From Tubulanus polymorphus (Eukaryota; Animalia; Nemertea): 64,000 bases of DNA. The position numbers were made by a program, and so were the translations under genes. Below, in pieces: positions 28,813 through 52,254 of this stretch; within the stretch, counting starts at the first letter, position 1, and every line of letters starts with the position of its first letter. The notes below the pieces were generated by a model that saw nothing but the letters and a program-made list of their open reading frames with translations, searched no databases and had not been told where the DNA came from. The DNA lies in the NCBI RefSeq assembly GCF_964204645.1, contig NC_134031.1:18607910-18671909 (forward strand), read 5' to 3'.

Positions 28813-29895
28813 ATGGCCGACACGACGAACTCGAAGATGGTAAACACGTCGACGACTAGCGCCGCGCCAAAAACCTGCGGAGATTTTGGTTTGGCGTCGT
28901 GCGAATACACGCCGCTCTACGCTATACCAGTCGTACCGATATCGGCGCTGACCATCTGCGGAAATCTATTCAATATAATAGTGTTAACGTTCACGCGTGG
29001 TATGCACAACAATCCTGGATATTTCATGTTCAATTTAGCGCTAACCGACTTATGCGTCGGCGTGATAATGGCGTCGTTCATGGCTCCGAGGATTCTCGGA
29101 GGTACGTGGCCGGCGACTCGCGTTCAGAGCGACATCACCGCGTTCTTCATCCAGACGACCGTCAGCGTGTCGTTGATGTCGCTGACCGGTTTGAGCGTCG
29201 ATCGGTACCTCAACATCAGTCGACCGCTTCACTACGACCGCCTGATGTCGAAGTGGCGTTGTATCGCGATTCTGATCGGTATTTGGACGCTCACCGGCGT
29301 TCTGCAGCTGCCGCCCGTGTTTTTCGGTTGGGGCGTATTCTTCTACGATTCGCGGTCGTTTCTGAGTTATTTCGACTACGCGCACTCGTGGGAGTGGACC
29401 GTCGGTTATAACCTCATCTTCACCGTGCCGTGTTTGCTCGCGATATTCACGTGCCACGTGAAGATATTCCGCATCACTCGACGCCACATCGACGCCATCA
29501 ACGCTACCACCGTCCAATCAAACGCCAACAACAAACAACGAACGAGCCACAAAGCCATGCGCACGGTCGTCATAACGATAACCATGTTTTTCATATGCTG
29601 GACGCCGTTTTGTTTCGAGCAGTTGTCGTACTCGCTCAGCGGGAACACCGTCGCCCCCTGGCCGCAGGAAGTGCACATGCTCCTCTTGCTTCTCATATTG
29701 TCGAACAGTTTTATGAATTGCATCATTTACAGCACGACGCATAAAGTTTTCCGAGACGGAGCGCGCCGGATTTTACGCACGGTTTTCTGTCGTCGCGGCT
29801 CGAGACCTCGCGTCGATCCGTACGACAACGAATTGAGATCGCGCTCTAAATCGCTATCGGTTACTATCTCCGTGGTAACCGATCAACAAAGCTGA
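28813..29895 (+). CDS. Rhodopsin-like (class A) orphan GPCR, 360 aa, single coding exon
   Basis: Seven hydrophobic segments with GN (TM1), NLALTD (TM2), DRY (TM3), W4.50, CWTP (TM6), NCIIY (TM7) and helix-8 FR. Confidence 0.96.
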   Translation: MADTTNSKMVNTSTTSAAPKTCGDFGLASCEYTPLYAIPVVPISALTICGNLFNIIVLTFTRGMHNNPGYFMFNLALTDLCVGVIMASFMAPRILGGTWPATRVQSDITAFFIQTTVSVSLMSLTGLSVDRYLNISRPLHYDRLMSKWRCIAILIGIWTLTGVLQLPPVFFGWGVFFYDSRSFLSYFDYAHSWEWTVGYNLIFTVPCLLAIFTCHVKIFRITRRHIDAINATTVQSNANNKQRTSHKAMRTVVITITMFFICWTPFCFEQLSYSLSGNTVAPWPQEVHMLLLLLILSNSFMNCIIYSTTHKVFRDGARRILRTVFCRRGSRPRVDPYDNELRSRSKSLSVTISVVTDQQS

Positions 29896-35621: not shown

Positions 35622-38600
35622 ATGACAATCGGAAAAGGAGAACGCAGTACATCGCCGGTACATGTACATGTTAACGAGGAGACGCCGGTTCATGTACATA
35701 TTAAAAAAGGAGCAGCAAGTCGAAAAGGAGCAGCAGAGGTAGGTCAACGGACAAGCCATAACGTTATGGGTCGCAATTGAACTCTTCGTTTCATTTCACT
35801 GCTTTTTTTTCAGGCGAGTAATTTGAGGTCGAGCACTGCCTTAGCGAAAACGAGATGTCGTAGCCCATCCCCTGGCCCGTGGATCCCACCCCCGGGTAAA
35901 TCAACCAGAGGATCTAAACCACTCACTTGGCAGGTATGTACCGATACTTAGAATCAACTTCGATATTTACAGCAAAATTTGATAAATTTGGATGTATTAG
36001 AATAAGTGACCATTTTAAGATCGAAATCGTGAAAATTACTTGAATCTTACTACATGCAGAAATATTTGAATTATCTAATGATAAATAATTTCACGTCTTG
36101 TTTCCATTTCTCGCATGTTTTATTTGCGTGTTTTTTTTCGCTTTGCATAATTTGTTAATTGCTTTGTTTGATGAATTTCCTGCTTGCAATTCTTTAAAAA
36201 TCTGAATTTCGACTATCAGTAGTTTATTAAATTCTAAAACTATAGACATAGTTAAACAACAACTAAAAATCTGCCTGATCGCTAGTTTGCATTCTAAAAC
36301 GAAATGTAGTTTTTGACCAAAAAAAACTAATCCTCGGGTAAATGCTAGATATTAATTACTAAGATTAGATAACTAATGAAAACTAAAGTTGACCGATAAC
36401 TTTAATTGAGAATAAAAAATTCGAGGACTGTGAAAATTCTGAGAAAGCTGAACTGGCAAAAAATTATTGGTAAGTTTAGCGTAGAAAAAATAGCTGTTAA
36501 TTTTTCGAACAAATTTGACTCGTTTTGGACCATGTCAAGGTTCCGCAATTTTGGGTTAAATCTTAATTCTAGATTCAAACTCTGGAGATCCGTGGAACTG
36601 GGTCCTGGATTCAGTTTCACAAACGGGATTGAAATATTCTTTCAATAATGAAGCTGAATTTATGGGCTGATGGTAGATCATCTTTTGGCCTGTCGGAAAA
36701 TATTCAACATGTCAAGTTTACTACGATGTAGTAATGTTTAATACAATCGACCTTCAATTCAGAGTTAATGCTGTTTAAATATCGCTCCGTCAAACAGTAG
36801 AATTCAGTCTCATCGAGGGACGCTTTATATTTCTTTTCTTTTTTATGAAAGAAAGTCATGGAATGAATTGTATTATTGTTTTGACAGGGTCTAGTTTGTA
36901 CACACATTCACCTAGTAAGTCGTCGGTACTGTCTTTGTATAATTGTAAAACATTCTTCGCTTGAAAACTGAATGAAAGATTGTGCCGTTTTAGTTTATTG
37001 AAATTGACTTAGTAATGACACACATTCCACGTCAATAAACAGGTGGTTGATTTTAGCCAATATTTGTCGGCCCTGGCGTGTGTGGTTTATGTCACTGTTT
37101 TAGTGCCTTGATTATATATAAAATCACTGGTTGTTTGACATAGCAGTTAAAACAATCTTGAGCAAAAGTGATTATACTTTTTCATATCATAGATTTAGCA
37201 AATTAGGACTAAATCAGCTTTGAAAATATACCTTATAATCTATGGCCAGTTTCACAGTTGTGAGTTAAAGTTAACTCTGACCTCAGGATCCAGTTCCACA
37301 GTTTATGAGTTAGAATTGATTCTTGGGTTAATATTAGTACAATCTAAATATTTCAACACCAGGAATTACAAGGAATCCAAAAAAACAACTCAGTTCATTT
37401 TAAACTTTGAGATCAGAATTGTCGAACTGTGGGCTGACGAGCTGAAATCAAGTAGTGCTCAATAAAACATCTTTTCTGGTTCCGATGAAATTATGAAACG
37501 GATTTAGGAAATATGATTAATTTTTCACTGTTTGTTCAGGGTAAATCAGGAAGATTAGAAATACATCAGCCCCGTAGCGGATCCGGCGGGGAACTCGATA
37601 CCGATGAAGAAGATCAGGTCGAGAATAAAATGCGTCAATACGAAAATAAAATCGATAATTTGATGACCGAAATGGGAACTTTACGCAATGAGGTAACGAT
37701 GAAAATAACGAACTCTTTTCATGTTGGCAGAACAAAGTTTAGTATAAAAATCACACTCTAGGAAAGAAAATAAGAGTGAAATTCAGTATTCCTGAAGATG
37801 ACTATTAGGATGTAGTCGAAACATTGGATATGAATCAATAACTCGAGGAATTATTTTGCTTCTTTAGCGTGGGATTTTTTATCATAACAATATGAACTCA
37901 CAGGGTGGCCACTGACCTGGAAAACTCGCGGAATAAAAACCAAAAAATCTAGAATAAAATCAGGGAAAATTTGAGCAATTTGACAAATTTTATGAACAAT
38001 CTGGAAAACTCGGGGAGATCTGGTAATGCTTTTGACTACTTGTGTTTCTTTATCAATAAGTGATTCAATGAAAAATGAATGAATTGTAACGTTTAAACCT
38101 AGAAATTTCTCTGATTCACTGAGGGAATTTTTAGTCATCACATGGAATAATCGGGGAAAACTCAGCAGGGGAATTTGTAGCGAAGTGTCTAGAGAATAAA
38201 AAAACTGACCCATGAAACGATTGTTTTTTGTTTCACAGGTCGAATTACAGAAAACTTTACGAGAAGTCGATAAAAAGGACGATTTATTGGAAGAATCTCG
38301 ACGGATTCTCGAGGAACAGGAGGAAAAACTGGGCGAATATAAAGACGAACTCGAAGAAACCGAACGCGAGAATCTGATCTTGCGACGCAGCATGGAACGA
38401 GGTTTAGAGCGTGTCTGCGACGCCGAGATGAACCGAGCCGAACAGGATCGATTGACCTCGGAGAAAGAGGAACTGATGAAGAAACTCGTCGAGGTTGAAA
38501 TAGACGGACAGGCGGCGGCGAAACAGTGCGCCGCGTTGAAAGACGCGATACGTCGTCTCAGAGAGGTACGGTATATCGTACCGGGATCAGTTGTACAGCG

Positions 38601-41600
38601 GGGACTTAGTGCGGGATCTTAAGACTAGCCTTAAGTTGTTAGATTGGCTACAGAACAAAAATGAGCTTAGACTGGTTTTAAGTTGTTAGATTGGCTACAG
38701 AACAAAAATGAGCTTAGACTGGTCTTAAGCTGTTAGATTGGTTACAGAACCAAAATGAGCTTAGACTGGTTTTAAGTTGTTAGATTGGTTATAGAACCAA
38801 AATGAGCTTAGACTGGTTTTAAGTTGTTAGATTGGTTATAGAACCAAAATGAGCTTAGACTGGTTTTAAGTTGTTAGATTGGTTACAGAACCAAAATGAG
38901 CTTAGACTGGTTTTAAGTTGTTAGATTGGTTATAGAACCAAAATGAGCTTAGACTGGTTTTAAGTTGTTAGATTGGCTACAGAACAAAAATGAGCTTAGA
39001 CTGGTCTTAAGCTGTTAGATTGGTTACAGAACCAAAATGAGCTTAGACTGGTTTTAAGTTGTTAGATTGGTTATAGAACCAAAATGAGCTTAGACTGGTT
39101 TTAAGTTGTTAGATTGGTTATAGAACCAAAATGAGCTTAGACTGGTTTTAAGTTGTTAGATTTGTTATAGAACCAAAACGAGCTTTAGACTGGCCTTACG
39201 TTGTTAGATTAGGTCTAAACCAAGCTCAAGCCAGGGTTCTGTTTAATGGAAACTCGATTTGATTTTATTGATTTCTCTGATTAATCTAATCCGCCTTTCT
39301 TCTCCCCCTCCTTTTTCCTCTCCCTCTCCTTTTTCCTCTCTCTCTCCCTCTCCCTCTCCCTCTCCCTCTCCCTCTCCCTCTCCCTCTCCCTCTCCCTCTC
39401 CCTCTCCCTCTCATTAATTGTCTCTTAATGTATTATTTCTGTCATGTTTTAGGAGAAGAGAATCAGTCCGTCTGACAGTGCATTGATCGCTAAACAGCGC
39501 GAGTTACTGATGGAGAAACTGGCTGATTTCGAATCGACGAATCGTAATCTACGTCGTCTGCTGAGAGAGGCTCATCGTAAAGAGGCCGCCGGAGTTCGGC
39601 TGATCGAACAAAGAGACGTTTTAATGAGGAAATTAGCGGAAACAGACGATTCTAATCAGGTTACTAACGACGACGATCAATCAATAACACCGTGTGCTAC
39701 CTAGTTGACATGACAACTGTTATCATGGTTACTCCTAAAGCCGCACCTGATTACAATGAAATTGAAAAAAACCAATGAGTGTTTCATTTCGCATTCCTTC
39801 ACTGTTTTTCTGTTGGGATGAAGCTCATCTTGTGTCGCTGTCTGCTGACAAACCAGGGCCCAGTTGCGCGGTCATCACTTAACCAGTTCCTAAGACTGGT
39901 CTTAAGTTGTTTAATTATTTGTAGAACAAAAAAAGTTGAAACACATTCTAAACGTAAGCTTTGACTGTAAAACTGGACCCAGTAGCCTGTAGTTGATGAC
40001 AGTGAGGTAGCAGAATACATCTTCAAGCTTTGTAATTGATAGAAATAACCTTTAGATCTAATGAACCTTTACTCACTATAACTCTACTGATAACACTAAT
40101 GATAAGAGGACCGACGTGAGCGCAGCTCTTTTCCAAACGAGCAAATCGTTTATTTTCGATGTTGATTCTGTTTTCACAGCGACTGAGAGCGAGTTCACTG
40201 GATAAAGAACGCGAGATGGTAGAATTAAAAGCGCAACTCGCAGCTCAAAGGGTAAGTGTGTCGCAAGTCCGTTTCCACGGTTCATGGTTGAAATTCCACT
40301 AGGGTTAGAAAATTTGTAATCAAGTAATTTTGGCCCTCGAGTGAAATGCAACAGAAAACCGTATATCTGGCTCCGCTTCAAGGCCTGGGCCCATTTTCAC
40401 AAAATAGTTGAACTCTTCATATTTGGTGTAATTGCTATAATGAGGACGACAATTCAAACTCGACCGTTTTTGGCTTACACTTTTTCGTGAAACTGTTTGA
40501 TTTTTTGCTGTAAACTCTGACCCAATATAGATATCTATTTCAATAGAATTGCTGCGATTGTTTATTTACCAGGATGAGAATTTAGCTATGGCGAGTTTAC
40601 AGGGTTCGATGGAATCGACAAGAGGACATTTACAAAAACAACTGCGCGCTAAAGAAGCCGATTGTAATCGTTTGGCCGTACAAGTTCGGGTATGTATACA
40701 CACTTAAAAATGATTTTCACAAATTTCTGTTTGAATAATGAAATCGGGCGATGATTGTTGAATCGTTCTCGTCGTAAATCAGGGAATGGAAAGTCAGTTA
40801 GCTCAGGAAAAGATCGAAGTCGACCATCTACAGGAGTTACTGGGTCAAGCGAAGGAGAAAGCGGAAAGAGATAAAGAGGCTTTGAAGAAAGCTACCAGGT
40901 ACATTGCGTAATATTGATCTAACTCTCCTTCAAACAATACAAACAGTAATATTGCCATTTAGTCAAAGAAATGTTCAAGCATTCCAAATATAGTAGACTC
41001 CCTGTGGTTATTTATGATTTCCAATCGGCTATTAGGTCGTGGAAATATTTCGGGATTCGTTTTGACTCGTATTTTTATTTTTTTTCTAGGGTACAGAAGC
41101 AGCGAGCTTCGAGAAGCGAAGACGCGATGGAAATCATGAATTCGCAATTACTGGAGAAAGAAACTCAACTCGCCGAAATTCAGAATCATATGGACGAATT
41201 TAAAGCGCGCATCGAGAAATTATCGCGCGAAAAGAACCAAACGATCACCGATAACGCTGTATTGAGAAAGTAAGCGTTTGATTTCATATTACAAAAAATC
41301 TCAACAGAGATCGAGCTCGAGTCTAATGTCCGTTCTATGATATTTTAACAGTCGTATTTCCGAGTTGGAAGCGATGTTAGAAGCTACCGACGATCGTAAT
41401 AAGTCGCAACAGGACGGTTTAAACATGAAACTACAACATAAATCATCGGAGGCGAATACGCTACGTTTGGAGAACGATCGTTTGAAGGTGAGAGAGAGAA
41501 TCATTTCAATTAAACATCATGGTGTTAGTGGTTGAAGTCCCGCAGTTCGTATGGTTTAGCGTGACTCAATGGGTCCTCGTTACCGGTAGTTTATCGGTTC

Positions 41601-44600
41601 TGATTATGTTTATAGAACTCAGCGAGTCGTATTTAAACCATATTTACAATGTGGAACTAGATCTTATATATAACATATACAATGTCAATATCATCCTTCA
41701 GAAAGTTCAGTTTCAGTTCAGTTCAAACGCCGTGATTAACTGACTCTTCCGGCCTCGGTTTCTCAAAAAATTCAAAACTCATTACGACGAAAACTTTTTT
41801 TTCGATTTCAAGTTTGAACTCTCCGGGATTGTAATAGCGTTCAAGACTCAGTTCCACAGTTCTGAGTTCAACGCACAACTGTGGAACCAGCTCCAATCGG
41901 ATTTTCAAGGATGATAGCTACATGTACGAACGATAGGTTAAAGAATGTGTATTACCCCTGGCTGACCCTGATATAAATACGTCAATCTCATTATCTACGT
42001 CGTAATCCGTATATCTATATCTATTATCAGTGTTTCTCCAGTTCAGTTTATATCATTAGCAATTTCTATGTTTCCTCTATTTGTTTCCGAGCTACAGCTA
42101 AAGTCCTCGAGCCAGTTCCACAGCTGTCTGTAGAGTTGAAATAACATTCTTGGGGCCAGTTGCGCGATAGTTAAAAGTTAACAGGCGAATGAATCCCGCA
42201 ATGAATCAGACGATGGTATTTGTCCACCGGGTAACTTTAACCAGCTTTTGAGCAACTGCAGGCCCTGGTAGTTGATATTCGGTGTTTGAGTCTAGCGAAG
42301 CTTTAAGCGACATCCGTGGAACTGGATCGTGTCCTACACACATATTTTCAAGTGTTCTGTTGGATATTTTTTCCACATTGACAACTCGGATCAAACTGCT
42401 CGCACAATGATCTTCCGCTATTGGCGAAGAGGGTCATTCATTTGAAAACTTGCCAATTTCTTCAAGTTGGCCGCATTTGTGAGACAAAAGACAAGGGTTG
42501 ACTTACTTTTAGCAATATTTAGGAGATAAAGGTTTCCTTAAAACAGTGCGTTTGGGTAACTTTGAGAGTTTGAATTAATTTTACTCATCATTTTCCGACC
42601 TCGTTCGAATTCCTAAAGACCGAACTCGATTCAATGAAAGAAGATTTCAAACGTCAGGCGGACGAACTGCGTCAGGAGGGCGCCGTGTTACAGGCGCGAT
42701 ACGAGCAACTGAGTCGTAGTCTGGACGCGGCGAATCACGATAAACAGCGTCATCAACTTCAGAGCAGACGCCTCGCCGATCAGATCAATAATCTCAATTC
42801 GGACGTCGAGAAATTCGTCGCCGATTCGACTCGTTTGAAACTAGAACGAGATCAATTGAAGGTACTCGTCAATCTGCTGTTGCTGTTGCTGCTGATGTGC
42901 ATGTACTCACTAGTGTAGGGTACTCGCACGCATGGTATTCTCATTAAACCCAGTTCCACACTCTAAATCTAAAACTATCCTAACACAAAGTGGCCGCTTA
43001 CCTGGAGATCAGGGAAAATTTGGGGAATATTCTTATCTTTAAAAGAGTCGGGGAATCTGGATTTTGTAAAAACAAAATGAAGCTAAAAAAAAGGGAAAAG
43101 TCAGGGAAATTTATCGAGATTGTTGTGTACCTGGGTTTTTTGGTCGTTTGCAAATTGAGTGTTGATATTTTGGGTTCGCATTTTGAGGCATGATTTTAGC
43201 TATAGTCTTATTATTTGGAAAATGCTTTGCATAAATTTTCTGATTTAAGTTTTGAGATTTACAATTTACGAAGTTTCTGCTTCCAATGAAATGATAACTA
43301 GATACGTAGATTGCAATAGAATCACTCAGGGTTTTTGAGTGAATTGAAAAATGAAAATTTGGTTCGAATACATTGCTAGGATATCATTTATGGCTTCATA
43401 GATTCTCCAGCAAAACCTATTCTTTCTGTCTCTCGTATGCGCTGTAGTCAAAATCAATTTTGGATCTAATTTCGTCAAAATTCATCATTTGAGATTCGTT
43501 GAATTTGAATAAGATATTGAATATGATCTGGATCCATTTCCGCAATTGACAATTGTTATTTAACTGTAGAGTCAAACCTAATTGGAAAAGGCTTAGCTCT
43601 AGAGTTAGATTCAAACGACAACTGTGGACTCGGGTTATGATTGATTTGTTTTTGTTTATTGCGCGAAGTCTGAACTGGAAACATCTCGTAGTTTCTCCGC
43701 CGCTCAAATCGATGCGTTGAACAAAGAATGCGCCGCGCTGAAATCGAAATGCGAAAACTTGAAAATCGATCTCGAAGCCGCCGCCAGGGGGCAGGAGAAG
43801 GAGAGAATCGAGTCGACTTGTTTGACCGAACAGGTCGACCAGTTGAAGTCGACCGTCGGGAAACTGCGATCGGAAAATATGGACGCGATAAATGAAAATC
43901 AGGATTTGAAGGTATATTTGAGAGTTCGCAAAATTAAAGTTTTTATTAGAATAATGATATTTGATTGGTGGCTCTTTGGGTGATGGTACCTATAATATTT
44001 AGGAATTGATTTACGATAAGAAGTTGGAGGAATTACAAAATTGCTTGTTTAATTACACGTTAAACAACTATTGAGGTTAGAAGATATCTTATAACCTTAA
44101 AGGCCCAGAAGCCCACACACATTATAAATGATAGATTTCTCTTAAATTTGAAAGTTGAAATTTGTAGATGAATTTGAAATCACTTGTCACGTACTGTTAT
44201 CACTGTTTCAAGGCTATAGAACATGATCTTGAATCTTAAAATTGTTGGATTGACCATGAAATAAAAATGAGCTTCAAACTTATACCTGGCCGTGGAACCA
44301 GTTGCATAGACCAGACTTTGAGAGTCCAAAACTGATCTTAAAACATTTGACCTGTTAGATTTCAGCCTTGACTGTGCAACAGGCCTCCGGACTTCTAAAC
44401 TATAGATTTTTATCTGGAAATTTATGTATCTTCAGTTTATTTTTTTATTTTTCTGTACTTTTATTCGATAAAAGCATGAATTGAAATCGGAGAAAGAATT
44501 ATTGAAAACGCGTACGGAACAATACGCTCGTGACCATGCCGACCACGAGGCTAAAGTCGACGCGATTCAAACGGAGTTAGACGCCGCGATTAGAGGCATG

Positions 44601-47600
44601 GAGGCATGTCGCCTAGACAACCAACAACTGACCGACAATCAGGCGGCGTTGACTCGAGAAAACGATAACTTGAAACGTGATTTCGAGGAGTTGCGTTCTA
44701 GGAATTGTTTATTACTGGGTGAAAGAGATGCACTTCAGGTATCACTAGACCCGCGTAGTACCGAACATGCTTTTTACCTTACTGTCTCAAAACCCTTTCA
44801 CTGACAGCATCTACCCCGCTATATGGTGTTTGATTGTCCCACCACAAACTGCATCTACCTTGCGGTGCCGCGTATTTTCTTACTTATTGATTAGCTAGCA
44901 TCGTGAAATCGTAGGTATGTGGGGTTGTCTGAGTCGGCACTGGGTAGTTGAATTTTCAGAATTTTTTGAATATACATGTATGTCCACCGATTGTAGGATG
45001 TGAAAGTGAAAGGGTTAATGTGCACAGATCTTCGTGTACATAGTATATGTATGATATGATAAGTAGTTCCTCTCCTCAGATTAGGCTTTCATATATTGTA
45101 TACTGTTAGAATGTTCCTCTAAATATCTAATTCCTGTCTAAAATGTTCCATCATCCAATGAGCCTCTGCTCCTGCTGCTGCTGCTGCTGTTGTCAGTAAG
45201 AACAGTCAAAATTTACTAATCAAAATATCTCTTTAATTAATGGGGTCCAGTCTCCTTGTGTGGAGACTGGAGCCCGGACCCAGTTCCATATTTCCTGGCC
45301 GAATTGGTTGAATTCATTTCCGATGATTTAACCCTAGCCAAATTTTAACTAAAAGCTATGGAGCTGGATCGTGATTACGTAATCTCTTACCCTTAAATTT
45401 CAAATACGTTTGAACATTTCAAAATGTCGGAATTTTCGAATCCTCGATTTTTGTTCTGAAATAAGACGTTTGTTTCCGACGCGCAGAATACGATGACGAC
45501 CTTCGAGCAGACGACGCCGGCGACCGAGAATCACCGCGAGTTACTGCAGCACGTCGACGAACTCAATCAACAATGCGTTGTGTTAAAGATGCATCTCGCG
45601 TCGGTTACCGACGATTTGAATAAATCGCTCGAGCGAGTCGACGCGAAGAATAAAGATACGTGTCGTCTGACCGGACAGGTCGACCAGCTTCGACTCGATT
45701 TCGATAAACTGAAAATGAAAAACGGCAACTTGAAATCGGAACGAAAAGAGTTAAAGGTATAAAAACATCGGGGAAACTTGAGAGACAAAGTTTCACACTT
45801 TTATAATCAGGGCCTGGTGGTTGCTTGGTCAAGGCTTAGATTGAAGACCAGTCTCAACTTAAGGCCACTTAAGTTCTGCAGCCAATCTAATAAGTTTAGA
45901 TCAGTCTTAAGATTGAACACCACTTCTTGTTAAGTTGTGGTTGCATGGTCACGACAGCCAATATGACTGAAGATCAGTCTTAAGATCTAACACCACCTTT
46001 GAAGTTGAGTCATGACTGCACTGATCCCCAGGTGAAATGGGCCCGTTTGGCAGTCCTGACTTTAAAATCCAAAAATGGTCTCGAATATTGAGATTGGTCT
46101 TTTAAGACTTTTTTGACTGTAGAACGAAGATGGACATAGACTGGTCCTAAAGCTTAGCCATGACTGACCACTGGGTCTGGATAATAGATGTCTCGGCTTG
46201 GAAGTAATTAGCTTAAACGGCATAATTTTCAAAAGATCATTTAACTCAACTTGAAAAAACTTCATAATTGCCTGAATTTGAATCGAAGTTTTACCGAAAC
46301 TCGTGTTGTTTCTATCATTGGCATAAAGATGGCGCTGCAGCGCGCTAACGATGAATTGTGCGAGTTGCGAGGTCGGTTTACCGGTTCACAGTCGCTGAAC
46401 GACTCGCTGAAAGCGGAGGTTAACGTCGCGATGAAAGGATTCGAAACTCAACAGACGGAATGCGACCGATTGAACGAACAGTTGAACGCGGCGAAATCTG
46501 AAACTCAAAAATTCGTCGCCGAAAACGCGGTTCTTATTAAAGATAACGAACGTTTGAAGGTAAAAAATAACTCAGAAAAGTGTTGAGTTAGATTTAGTTA
46601 CCGTTTAGAATTATGAACCTATTGTTTCCTGTTACTGTTGATGTTACTGTTTGATTTCCTTTTACTGAAAATGTTGTTTATTTTGTTTGTTTGTGAAAAA
46701 TTGAAATAAAGTTTAGAGATGAATTTTATGGCTGCCATTTCTATTTCTTGTTGTTCGTTTGTGAAATAGTTCTGTGTTATTACCAAACCTTTTTTTGCTT
46801 CGAAAACCAGTTCCACGGTGTAAGGACTTGGGACTGGAAACCTATTTAACCTTTAGATAATTTTCCTTTGAATGATATGTTGGCGATTGTTTTCACTAAT
46901 CAAAATCCATTTATTTTTACTAATTGTAATGTAGTTGTATATTGTTTGTAGGTAGGTGTTTAAAGAAAACCAAATACGCTTCATTCTAATTGATGGTTGT
47001 TCTGAAAACTGTGTTACAGAGCATTACCCTGAATCGTGAAATAATTCTTTCCTTTTACTGGAAATTACTAAACAATCTAGGGGAAGGCAACTGCTCAAAA
47101 AGCTGGTTCGAGTTAACCGGTTGGTAGTTGACATTGTGATAAATAAAAGTTCATTGTTACTATGGTATACATCTGACGGTTATCTTTAACCAACTCTTGA
47201 GCAACTAGCCCCTAAATCCTATGCTTTGCTTGTTCCCAGCCCCCTCTCCTTCCCTCTTCCGGTTGTTACTAAAAACTCCGAAGTCATATTCTCTTAATTC
47301 AGCGCGTGTATGTTTAATGATTCGATGTTTGTTTGCATTTTAGTCGTCGATTGGAACTATCGAAGATAAATTATCGCAGGCCGAGTTAGAAGTGTCGACT
47401 TTGAAATCGAGTCTACGCCAATACGAGAACTTGGTCGAGGAATATCGCGTTCAGGTCGGTATACCGGGGCTGGTGTTAGAGAGGGGGTTTCCTTGCGTAT
47501 ATTGCTGTATATTGAAAATGATGAATTTGATGAAGTCGAGAGAATAAGGCCTAATGTAGAAACGTAACGACGAATCTCTTTGTAATTCAGGTGAATAAAT

Positions 47601-50600
47601 CTCGAGCCGAGTCCGAGGAAGTGATCGGTAAATATGAGGAATCGCAGAAAGAAGTAGCACGCGCTCAACGCGAGGGAGATATAGAACTAGAGAAGGTAAA
47701 TAATTCACTTATTTATCGCCGTGCGTCGAGAGGAAATAAAACTAACAAACAATACAGAAAAAACACTTGAAATCAACACAGATTTTTAATGTGTTAAGTT
47801 AACTACAGCGGAACCTTGTTACAACGAACTTCAGGAGACCAGAAAATCTCTTCATTGACATTCTAATCGATAGTTCATTGTATCTAGTATGAAATTAATC
47901 AAAATTGTCTAAACTTTGGTCACAAAATTCCAGGCCTGTTATCTGATTAAGTGTTATCCAAGTTCGTTATAACGAGGTTCAATTGTATAGTTTAAGAATG
48001 AAAGCTAACTATAGTAAAACAATTGATCCATGAGCCAAGGCATTGTAGCGTTTAACATTAGTCTGTGCACTCTTTAACAGTAAGCGGTTAACCAACACCT
48101 CGGTAGCTGGTAGGTTTAGAATTTCATTAAGCTACCGCATGCTGCCAATTACCATCATTTCACCGATGTTTCTCTGAATAAAGAATATTGTCCGCAATAT
48201 TTGACACTTGTAAAACAAATATACGCAGAATTATTTGGATTGTATTTCACTTGCACGTAAATATTGTATTCTATGATATTTACTGTAGTACACAGCATCC
48301 TACCTTGCAACATTCTCACATTGCAGTGAATCTCACTAACTGAGTTATGCTTTCTATGCTAATTGAGTAATGTATGACATTCTGAAATATCTCAGAGGCG
48401 CGACAAGCTCCTGTTTGTCTCTGCCGATTCAGAATTTTAATTCGAAGATATTGAAAATGAACTTGATTTAAAAAATGAGAACTTGGTCGTGGGTCAAGAT
48501 TTGATTCTAGCTCATTGAAACATTGAAAAACACACTGATTCTGAATTGAAGGGCACAGTTCAGGGTGTCTTTCATGCTTATAGGGACTAGGTGCAGCAGA
48601 CCTGACTACGACTGCTATTTGAGAATAGTTTCTATTCCTAGTTCAACTTCTCTCAAAAATATCTAAATACAGCAGAACTGGCGTAAGAATTTCGACCGAA
48701 TTTGCCGATTTTCCGAGTTACAGCTGTCCAACTTAGGCCATTTCTACTATACTCTCCAAATCGGTGTAATTTCTAGTTCATTTTCAATCGTACAACTTTT
48801 TTTGTCAAATTCTCTCGGTTTTATTGAAATCTACTACAATCAGTGATATCAGGTAGTCCGGACTGGTCTGGTCCAGCTGCTGCTGCTGCGTTATTCTATG
48901 ATGTGATATGACTATACTATATTTGACACTGACTCGTCTCGTAGGTTCGTAGCCGATTACAACAACGTTTACACGAACTCGAGCCGCTCCCGGAATTATT
49001 GAAAACCACCGAACTTCGCTTGCAAGATTTAAACGATAAAAATATCGATTACGAACGTCGAAATATCGATCAGATGAGATTAACTACCGAGTTAAATTCA
49101 AAGGTAGGAGAACCCCTTCTCTCCCCTCACCCCTTTATACTCCCTCGTCGCACCTCTACAAGGGAGGACTCCCCATACCCCGTTGTTAAGATTTTTGTTC
49201 GGCTGAAGTATTTGTTTTTCTCGTTCTGTGTCGATGTTTTTACGTTTTGTACGTAGCTTCGCTTAAAACTAACATTTTCGCGTTTTCTAGTGTCAGATTT
49301 CTGTGTGTTTGTTCCAGACAATGTTTCAGGTGGTTTTCGGGATGTCTCGTTCTAGGGGCTGGAACCAGTTCCATAGTTCACCCAAAAATCAGTTCATATT
49401 CAGTACTCAACCCACGACTGTGAAACTGTAGAACTGTGGAACTGTGAAACCAGCTCCTGGACAAGGGCTTTGCTTTTTGAGGAGCCTGATGATACCAAAA
49501 TTGTTGAACACTTCACACGTACTTGAAATCTATAATCTAGCCATTGTTGAGGTGTAACCCGTAAGATTATCTGGTATTCAGAATGATCAAGGGGTAACCC
49601 ATAAGATCTTCTGTGGACCAGTAAAATCAGCTGGTATTCACACTGTTTTAGGGGTAACCCGTAAGATCATCTAGTATTAGGCCTCTAGAAAGCTGTCAGT
49701 GTTTTGTGTATCTAGTCTTGGCTCATGGTTAAACGGATAACAATTTTAAAAAAAACGGTTTAATTCTAAAATTAATGTTTTTTAACACGTCACAGTTTCA
49801 AGGATTTCTCGGTTTAACATACCGGTACTCGCATAACTAACATTTAAAGCACATGAAAATTTTCAGGTCTCGCAATCCGCAGCCGTGGAGCGCTCGTCCC
49901 CACCACCCCTGCGGTCCCGGTCTCCTGTATGGGACTCGGGCTACTCCCTGCCTCCTCGACCCCAGTCTCCGGTACGAGATACGACCGGCGGCGGTTGGAG
50001 CTCAGCGGATTCAGAAATGTTACGCGAACTGATGCAGAAGGTAAACTGTCGTCTGCTGTAAGAGCAGACGGACGGACGATGCATGAGTGTCTGGTTGAAG
50101 GGATCTATTTATAAACACAAAGCTGCCAAACATTAACAAGATTCAGTAAACCTCACCTAACTGGGTTAAAAACCTGGGACCAGTTGCTCAAAAAGTGGTT
50201 AGAGTTAACCGGGGGGATAGTTGACAATTTCATTGATACTTTGGTATTTATCCATCGCTTATCGATCACTTACTTCTGAGCAACTGGCCCCAGGACCGGC
50301 AAAATCAGTCCGAGTTAAAAATTGGAAATATAAGATCAGAAAAAATCAGAAAATGATCGCCTTATTGGTGTGAGTTAGTCAAAACTCCTAAGTTTGCTAG
50401 TTAGGTAAGGTTTACTGTAAATTATAAACCTTTTCCATTTGGATCTGGTTCCACAATTCTCTGTTAAATCTGACTCTAGAGTCAATTCTTAACTTAAAAC
50501 TGTGGAACTGGGTCCAGAACAAAGACTTCATGAAGAACCCTAGACGGGTATTCGACAATTTTCAAAATGATCTCTATTATTCGAACTGTTTAAAATTGTC

Positions 50601-52254
50601 TCATGATGTTGGCAGCTCTCCAACACATATTCTATCTGCATCACTTAACCTCTTCTAATCAATGTTTCTCAATCAAAGGCACCCCATGGTTTTTCGAAGA
50701 AGCAAATGTATTTCTGTATCAATGATTTTATGCATCTTGTGTTTTTGCGATCTCTGGTGGAGAGTTACTGTATGTGTCACTTGATTTCGTCTCATTCCAA
50801 TCATTGCTTTCAACCCACCCAATATTGCATGTAATTGATTATTTGGGTTTTTAGCCCAGCAAAATACGACTTTGTTTGATTATGAATAACAAATGTTTCA
50901 CCGGTTGAAGAAAATTCAATAAGTTTGATATTCTGACTTCTGACATAAGAAAAAAAAAGGGAGCCCAATAAGTTCGAATGAGTCGTCATCGCGGGTCTCT
51001 GATTGGTGTTTTTTGTAAATATTTGTAGGTCGACCATTTAACGAAACAGTTAGAATCGTTGAGAGACAAGTGGCACATATCGCAGGACGAGAACCGTTCG
51101 TTACAGACGACTCTCGAGATGTTAGAACGTAAATTACGAGAGGCAGACGAACAAAATCGTGAACTCGTAAACGCGCTTAATAAAAAAGAGGAAACCATGG
51201 CGACTAATCAGGTGCGCGGCGCTTTTATCATTCCATACATGGCTACTATCATTACTGCTAAACGCGTTATGCTACACTCAATGCTTCCGCTCACGCGTAT
51301 AGCTTCATTTAGACAGATGAATAGGCATCTGTCCTTTAGACTGCACCTTACTCTGCAACAGGTCGAATAAGGTGCAGTTTATGTTTTTAGTAAGGCAGAG
51401 TCTACTGTATTTAACTGAATTCACTCATTTACTTAATTAAGAGTCTATTCTATCATTTCTACTCAAACCACAAACACTGCCAGGTTGTCTATTAGAATAG
51501 AATCTATATGACACAATGTATCTGTCACCATCACTTTAATCCATCACAGGCTTCACAATGCTATTAAATAGACAGGTAAAATGACAGGATAACATCGAAC
51601 TAAAGAATAATCAATATTTTTTCGTTACAAGATGTTGAAATGTTATCTGAATAATTTCAGCATCGTCTAGACGAGAAATCTCGCGAGAACTCGTGTTTAA
51701 CTCGTCAGTTAGAGAACTCGTTGACGGACGCGCGACGACAGGCGGAGCAGTCCCGCGAGAAAGCGTCGCAGAAAGAGCGACAATGTCACTCGCGAATCCT
51801 CGATCTGGAAGCGCAACTCAGTCAAACACGCGGAGAAATATCACGTATCAAGAGAGAGAAAGAAGAGGTGCGTTCAGTCTTAGCTCATTCTAAACCGAAA
51901 ATACTTTTAAATATGCTTGAAACTCCTTTAATTTGATCAAAACGCCCAAAACTCCTTCGATTCAGAAAAAAAGGGAATAAAAATTTTTGTTTGAAAGTTC
52001 GTTCGACTCAAATCGACAACATTTTAACCGCGTTGCTGTTTTTTGTATTTTCGTCGCAGGCCGAAAGAAGGTATAACTCGAGGCTTTACGATTTGAAGGA
52101 TCGTTTGGAACAATCTCACAGCACGAACCGCAGCATGCAGAACTACGTTCAATTCCTGAAGAGCTCGTACGCGAACATATTCGGAGACACGACGATGGCT
52201 GGCAGCGCGTGCGGTGGCGCCACCTCTCCGCTACGATCCAGCGCGTTGAATTAA
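35622..52254 (+). CDS. ODF2: Outer dense fiber protein 2 / cenexin
   Basis: Core exons: 35622-35738, 35814-35933, 37540-37692, 38239-38565, 39453-39659, 40180-40251, 40573-40689, 40783-40898, 41090-41269, 41352-41487, 47344-47454, 47591-47695, 48945-49103, 51029-51211, 51661-51867, 52060-52254. Extra cassettes are listed under findings. Signature motifs: PVHVHVNEETPVHVHIKK, PWIPPPGK, RGHLQKQLR and LKDRLEQSHSTNRSMQNYVQFLKSSYANIFGD. Confidence 0.96.
37787..37830 (+). ncRNA. Minimal hammerhead ribozyme (Penelope-type) in an ODF2 intron
   Basis: Stem I TATTC/GGATA; CTGAAGA at 37792-37798; stem II GACTA/TAGTC; GAAA at 37818-37821, then CATT where the consensus is CGTH. The downstream tail resembles the 26.4-kb element. 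Confidence 0.65.
38620..39210. repeat. About 12 x 47-bp tandem repeat amplified from the interior of a family B MITE
   Basis: The unit TTAGACTGGTTTTAAGTTGTTAGATTGGTTATAGAACCAAAATGAGC matches 14417-14480 and is preceded by a MITE left end at about 38583. Confidence 0.92.
39300..39412. repeat. (CCCTCT)n microsatellite
   Basis: Pure hexamer run just upstream of ODF2 exon 39453. Confidence 0.95.
47806..47985. mobile_element. pogo/Tigger-like MITE with TA TSD
   Basis: ta-CAGCGGAACCTTGTTACAACGAAC...GTTCGTTATAACGAGGTTCAATTG-ta. Confidence 0.75.

Follow-up and report, generated by a model that had tools for sequence, protein, structure and literature searches.

Five tandemly duplicated coiled-coil exons, probably alternative cassettes, in an intron of the ODF2 gene of Tubulanus polymorphus

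The locus and its gene

The analyzed stretch of the genome of the nemertean Tubulanus polymorphus (NCBI RefSeq assembly GCF_964204645.1, contig NC_134031.1, positions 18,607,910 to 18,671,909; 64,000 nucleotides, referred to as the window, whose own numbering is used throughout) carries a gene for outer dense fibre 2 (ODF2, or cenexin). In one of its introns, between a core exon ending in RLENDRLK (exon H) and a core exon beginning with SSIGTIEDKL (exon I), lie five additional exons predicted to encode coiled coils, here designated cassettes 1 to 5 (c1-c5). The gene was traced from pieces of open reading frames and by homology; its extent in Table 1 is that of the traced part, the exons toward the N-terminus upstream of position 37540 being outside the map.

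The gene was assigned to the ODF2 family from exon-by-exon searches, in which core and cassette exons were used individually. The last exon (52060-52251) yielded 25 matches to short proteins or protein fragments (E 1e-20 to 9e-10, 54-85% identity), three of which are labelled "outer dense fiber protein 2" by JGI; matches so named show 61-85% identity. This exon encodes the ODF2_C-region end ...STNRSMQNYVQFLKSSYAN..., the conserved C-terminus of the ODF2/cenexin family. Moreover, exons A, B, C, E, F, G, H, I and N have counterparts in the same order, with 39-84% identity, in locus L011, a 17.5-kb contig of another animal that contains an "outer dense fiber protein 2" fragment and whose products have precomputed Pfam ODF2_N and ODF2_C assignments. 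Through this locus the N-terminal and central coiled-coil parts of the predicted protein are colinear with other ODF2 genes. Three further loci (L009, L010 and L012) had only the last ODF2 exon within reach. The gene is single-copy, the 268-Mb genome having one occurrence of the last exon, and its identification as ODF2 in a preliminary description of this DNA is upheld by the named last-exon matches and by the colinearity with L011.

Other searches were less informative. A Pfam scan of the exons against a local copy of the database, which may not include the ODF2_N and ODF2_C accessions, gave no ODF2 match, and its generic coiled-coil hits all lay below the threshold. Protein searches by word index with c1 and core exon B returned no match; queries of exon length cannot reach full-length proteins. 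Searches of the ESM Atlas and PDB sequences with exon B found generic coiled coils only. The counterpart of exon B in the other animal (L011:1448-2776) consists of two exons separated by approximately 1 kb, so the intron there is absent from the window gene, or the reverse.

Anatomy of the exon array

The positions of the array and its flanking exons are given in Table 1. All five cassettes are free of stop codons in the frame used here, have lengths divisible by three and are of phase 0-0, with a GT directly 3' of each (donors gtactc, gtatat, gtatca, gtataa and gtaaaa for c1 to c5, respectively). Their C-terminal residues, ERDQLK, ENQDLK, ERDALQ, ERKELK and DNERLK, resemble the ENDRLK end of exon H. 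A pyrimidine-rich tract precedes each acceptor. In-frame stop codons are located 3 to 84 nt upstream of the cassettes, which limits c1, c2, c3 and c5 to an AAG acceptor unless the exon is shortened; the 45 open nucleotides upstream of c1 hold a single AG, that of the AAG acceptor. In c4, a CAG acceptor in the same frame lies 21 nt downstream of the AAG option.

Table 1. ODF2 gene, cassette exons and flanking core exons in the window
Feature	Position	Strand	Remarks
ODF2 (outer dense fibre 2 / cenexin), traced extent	37540..52254	+	14 core exons and five cassettes
Core exon H	41352..41487	+	frame from 41353; ends ...RLENDRLK|gtgaga; CAG acceptor; donor 41487 joined to 43669 in X4
Cassette 1 (c1), 81 aa	42619..42861	+	acceptor ctaaag, donor AAG|gtactc; skipped in the observed transcript
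Cassette 2 (c2), 81 aa	43669..43911	+	acceptor gcgaag; included in mRNA (X4 joint)
Cassette 3 (c3), 88 aa	44475..44738	+	acceptor taaaag, donor CAG|gtatca; included in mRNA (X4 joint)
Cassette 4 (c4)	45466..45756	+	97 aa from AAG at 45465 (aataag) or 90 aa from CAG at 45486; skipped in the observed transcript
Cassette 5 (c5), 77 aa	46329..46559	+	acceptor ataaag; skipped in the observed transcript
Core exon I (SSIGTIEDKL...EEYRVQ)	47344..47454	+	TAG acceptor; joined to 44738 in X4

Direct reading of positions 41200-47600 agrees with the preliminary description on most of this anatomy: it had reported five open, heptad-rich exons of phase 0-0 with these lengths, translations and boundaries, ends echoing the core ENDRLK, four rare AAG acceptors with a fifth offering either AAG or an in-frame CAG, and pyrimidine-AG (YAG) acceptors in the core exons. 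The last of these statements holds for all 14 core acceptors, which were placed by frame and homology. One correction concerns exon H, whose interval was right; as this exon has 136 nt, its reading frame starts at 41353.

The unusual acceptors raised the possibility of minor (U12-type) introns, which would need a /RTATCCTT donor and a branch site. This was rejected, as no donor has the ATCCTT core.

Tandem duplication and coiled-coil register

A self-comparison of the translated exons and a check of their coiled-coil register had been proposed in the preliminary description. The five cassette peptides share 25-30% mutual identity, and their pairwise local alignment scores lie 2.2 to 12.4 standard deviations above those of 200 shuffles, mostly 4 to 12, with the lowest value for the pair c4-c5 (2.2). 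The closest paralogues of c2 are c1 (z 12.4) and c4 (z 12.2). A profile built from the five cassettes and run against the 268-Mb genome recovered each copy with 95-118 bits; nothing else scored above 25 bits, which makes the array unique, without a sixth copy. The cassettes are thus adjacent, significantly similar, identical in phase and 77-97 aa long, and judged by these sequence features they are old tandem exon duplicates.

The source of the original unit is less clear. Derivation from exon H is only weakly suggested by the c4-H comparison (z 5.5) and by a 7-bit profile match to the end of exon H; exons K and G scored slightly higher with the same profile. Pairwise scoring revealed no resemblance between the cassettes and the downstream core exons.

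A hydrophobic periodicity of 3.5 residues is significant in each cassette (z 3.7-7.3; 7.1 in c1). According to the occupancy of positions a and d, heptad position e is taken by the last residue of exon H and of every cassette, and exon I begins in position f. Any cassette is therefore predicted to join exon I in coiled-coil phase, just as exon H does. At their N-terminal sides, c1-c3 start in position b, which shifts the phase by four residues whichever exon precedes them, and c5 starts in f and is continuous.

Splicing of the array in RNA-derived contigs

Contigs from sequencing runs of one organism were compared with positions 41415-47414 of the window (6,000 letters). There were five runs (X1-X5), none of them on record as RNA; contigs of X1-X4 entered the comparison. 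X5, the sole run guessed to be RNA, contained none of the sampled words. X1 behaves as DNA, as one of its contigs runs colinearly with the genome from 42167 to 47074.

Two contigs of X4 are spliced. The first (848 nt, depth 34) joins 41487 to 43669, i.e. exon H to c2, skipping c1, and the second (674 nt, depth 30.7) joins 44738 to 47344, i.e. c3 to exon I, skipping c4 and c5. Both joints have GT..AG borders located exactly at the predicted exon ends, which establishes c2 and c3 as real exons, and the gcgaag acceptor of c2 is used. The c3 contig departs from the genome at 44472-44475 and continues upstream with 15 extra letters, which fits the use of the taaaag acceptor. Because the cassettes and the last exon have a single genomic copy, the joined forms are best read as cDNA; a retrocopy as their source was rejected, since the assembly contains no second copy.

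The extra letters of the c3 contig very probably represent the end of c2, and hence a c2-c3 joint. Together with the shared AAG, the 15 loose letters make up 18 nt, corresponding to 43894-43911. The contig with c2 ends at 43892, and the next site, 43893, which is variable in X1, is not covered in X4; the shortest joint sides listed have 20 and 21 nt, more than the 18 nt at issue here. The polymorphic sites 41469 (in exon H) and 43893 (in c2) are at the same distance, exactly 18 nt, from the ends of these homologous exons, and both are synonymous third-position changes. Given this shared position, extra care was needed in assigning the letters to c2.

The remaining cassettes have a different coverage. 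In X4, c1 is found in one contig only, which follows the genome through both of its splice sites, c4 only in an unspliced contig (45591-45824) and c5 only in a genome-colinear contig (45976-46453); throughout X2-X4, c1, c4 and c5 are covered solely by contigs colinear across their splice sites. As contigs drop rare forms, such coverage does not prove that these exons are absent from mRNA. The skipping of c1, c4 and c5 in the X4 contigs means that the array is not included constitutively as a block. Of the earlier proposal that all five cassettes are spliced exons, the part concerning c2 and c3 is thus confirmed by the X4 joints, and the inclusion of c1, c4 and c5 is not: these were skipped, and none was seen spliced in. 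Inclusion that is combinatorial, specific to tissues and coordinated by weak acceptors, also put forward in the preliminary description, stays a hypothesis.

CTG/GCT microsatellites occur in two cassette introns (42870-42900 and 45160-45195) and produced a false joint, 42898 to 45166, and a depth spike, both of them artefactual and unrelated to splicing.

AAG acceptors of the cassettes

Acceptors of the AAG type are found in four of the five cassettes (c1, c2, c3 and c5, whereas c4 has the CAG alternative) and in none of the 14 core exons, all of which have CAG or TAG (Fisher p = 0.0013). The acceptor context TAAAG or ATAAG is present in 4/5 cassettes. The introns flanking the cassettes have diverged beyond alignment and share short dispersed matches only. 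In human, the efficiency of 3' splice sites decreases in the order CAG > UAG > AAG > GAG (PMC11802449). The A at position -3, kept in all five copies despite the divergence of the introns, tentatively suggests that weak acceptors have been maintained; a retained member of the weakest common acceptor class would help to keep cassette inclusion regulated.

The AAG may also have no regulatory meaning, having descended passively from one ancestral AAG or being common in this genome. We regard this as a real, if somewhat less probable, possibility, and it is compatible with any of the other explanations discussed below. That the cassettes are copies of one unit, with a TAAAG/ATAAG context common to four of them, is what passive descent would give; in introns that no longer align, however, a -3 base free of selection should drift toward C or T, as found at all 14 core acceptors, and the lack of AAG among these caps its background frequency at approximately 19%.

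A bolder proposal, which we consider improbable, is that the cassettes form a coordinately regulated exon class, in which a 3' splice-site factor restricted to certain tissues would recognize the conserved -3 A within an (A/T)TAAAG context. The combination of rod inserts would in that case differ between the sperm-tail and basal-body forms of ODF2 and set the dimensions of fibres or appendages.

Distribution in other animals

In L011, the counterpart of exon H ends with RLENDRLK|gtaata and is followed by a 356-nt intron without an open frame, and then by ttatag|TSVSTIEDKL. The position and phase of the H-I intron are therefore common to this locus and the window gene, but the cassettes are not. 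The cassette profile was also compared with 1.84 billion protein representatives, a library apparently lacking this species' own proteins. It gave 73 weak matches, all of them to unrelated repeat or coiled-coil proteins (the best with 83.9 bits over 10 stretches) and none to any ODF2 core exon.

These results support the view that the cassettes are specific to the lineage, the comparison of genes covering one other animal (L011) together with those ODF2 proteins within reach of the profile. They are in line with the preliminary description, which held the extra exons to be lineage-specific insertions into ODF2, absent from the vertebrate gene. We take human ODF2 to be likewise uninterrupted at the homologous junction (...KLENERLK followed by ASFAPMEDKL...).

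Probable alternative use of the cassettes

With moderate confidence, we interpret the five paralogous phase 0-0 exons of the H-I intron as alternative cassettes derived from an old tandem duplication. A coiled-coil exon would have been duplicated in the intron between the RLENDRLK and SSIGTIEDKL exons. In the single RNA-like data set, c2 and c3 are spliced in, adding 169 aa, with c1, c4 and c5 skipped. Any subset of cassettes would keep the reading frame as well as the coiled-coil phase at the 3' junction, and ODF2 could thus be produced with central rod inserts differing in length and sequence.

The status of c1, c4 and c5 is central to this interpretation. We infer that they are functional alternatives used elsewhere, since they have open frames (77-97 codons), intact AG and GT dinucleotides and pyrimidine tracts retained despite 25-30% paralogue identity, a conserved heptad phase and an exon-like CpG content. 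The observed/expected CpG ratio is 1.9, 2.2 and 2.2 in c1, c4 and c5, respectively, as compared with 1.7 and 1.65 in c2 and c3, 1.5-2.2 in the core exons and 0.45-1.05 in the introns. Throughout ODF2 (38239-52251) every exon lies in the range 1.5-2.2, so that the exons resemble small CpG islands. Three variants were found in c2 in X1, all at third codon positions.

Several observations weigh against the alternative use of the cassettes. None of the contigs of X1-X4 has c1, c4 or c5 spliced in, and none has c2 or c3 skipped; no single cassette was observed in both the included and the skipped state, in what amounts to contigs of one RNA-like run. This run represents one sample, of a type not on record, and contigs lose rare isoforms and cannot measure levels. 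The four variants found in c1-c3 (750 nt; 8.6 expected, p = 0.07) are too few to speak for purifying selection. As regards the acceptors, the A at -3 may simply go back to the ancestral copy and does not necessarily reflect five independent events, and the rarity of AAG was gauged on the 14 core acceptors of the same gene, not on a genome-wide set.

In line with the first of these observations, c2 and c3 could be constitutive lineage-specific exons, and c1, c4 and c5 unused relics of the duplication that are never spliced in. We consider this rather unlikely, though it is the most serious competing explanation. It agrees with the X4 data, in which the spliced contigs hold c2 and c3 only and the other three cassettes are solely genome-colinear, and with the protein collections, which gave no match like c1 in the word search or like any cassette in the profile search. 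Yet these copies are old and still keep their frames, splice sites, pyrimidine tracts and end-phase heptads, and the CpG ratios of c1, c4 and c5 are like those of coding exons and unlike those of introns. Furthermore, c1 and c4 are the nearest paralogues of the expressed c2.

Alternatively, all five cassettes might normally be included, forming a constitutive insert of approximately 420 aa, with the X4 transcript as a minor or tissue-restricted short form. The five are equally exon-like, and contigs cannot rank isoforms; nevertheless, the skipping contigs are the deepest of X4 in the region (34 and 30.7), and four runs gave no spliced contig into or out of c1, c4 or c5, which makes this explanation quite improbable. 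Mutually exclusive splicing, with exactly one cassette per mRNA, would suit tandem duplicates of similar length that are all of phase 0-0, but it is most improbable: c2 and c3 both occur in spliced X4 contigs of like depth, the 18 letters upstream of c3 fit the end of c2, the L011 core aligns across the junction without any cassette (so no copy is obligatory in ODF2), and dispersed repeat motifs were found in place of any array-specific docking/selector pairing. The array was accordingly not classed as a mutually exclusive cluster.

Repeats and neighbouring features

A 9-mer, CAGTTCCAC, is present in several cassette introns (e.g. 41849-41857, 42113-42121, 42316-42324, 42951-42959 and 46808-46816). 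A selector or docking role of this motif was rejected because of its window-wide spread: with one mismatch allowed, it has 44 matches in the window, where 11 would be expected. The matches lie on either strand, frequently as closely spaced inverted pairs, and look like what is left of a scattered repeat resembling a miniature inverted-repeat transposable element, not specific to the cassette introns.

The whole array is flanked by a 24-nt pair with 88% complementarity (42226-42249 and 47098-47121). We do not put it forward as a specific looping element, since it sits in very high-copy repeat DNA. The segments 47015-47214 and 42210-42257 reach a summed contig depth of 5146 in X1, as compared with approximately 26 for unique sequence. 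The repeat has an internal hairpin-like symmetry, and the related piece lies upstream of c1.

Another ODF2 intron contains a CT/GA-type microsatellite (39259-39417), open on either strand as SPSPSP or RGRGRG. Upstream of ODF2, an intronless open frame of 360 aa (28813-29895, plus strand) has hydrophobic segments that, by eye, follow the pattern of a putative seven-transmembrane receptor.

Relation to known systems and significance

As in vertebrates, where one ODF2/cenexin gene gives rise to several coiled-coil isoforms serving centriole appendages, basal bodies and the sperm tail (PMC2766462), the array belongs to a member of this family. The vertebrate variants described in that article involve exon 3b near the N-terminus, and the ends of the protein (Huber and Hoyer-Fender 2007, in PMC2766462). 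As far as that account goes, the variable part differs in location, since here it is a mid-rod array of five duplicated exons.

Alternative exons arising by tandem exon duplication, including mutually exclusive clusters, are well documented (PMC9741552, PMC8373072, PMC6071210). The ODF2 array shares with the examples treated there the origin by duplication, the symmetric phase and the homologous alternative protein segments. In contrast to them, the cassettes are added and not substituted, no fewer than two are included jointly, and ODF2 needs none of them to be complete.

Differentially spliced arrays of repeat exons also occur in long structural proteins, e.g. nebulin and titin. The likeness lies in modular in-frame repeat exons that alter the length of a structural protein; the ODF2 array is much smaller, affects a centriolar/ciliary coiled-coil protein and has a uniform AAG acceptor.

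As a scaffold of centriole appendages, basal feet and the outer dense fibres of sperm, ODF2 is deeply conserved, with a central rod that is colinear from the window gene to L011 and presumably also to human ODF2. Tandem duplication followed by alternative use is a well-known mechanism, and the array, a real but modest lineage-specific splicing module, extends a known kind. It is a compact case for how old duplicated exons stay alternative, and the hypothesis offered by its uniformly non-YAG acceptors is simple and open to testing by mutation. An in-frame array compatible with the heptad register would also constitute a natural experiment on how the length and sequence of the ODF2 rod relate to the assembly of appendages or fibres.

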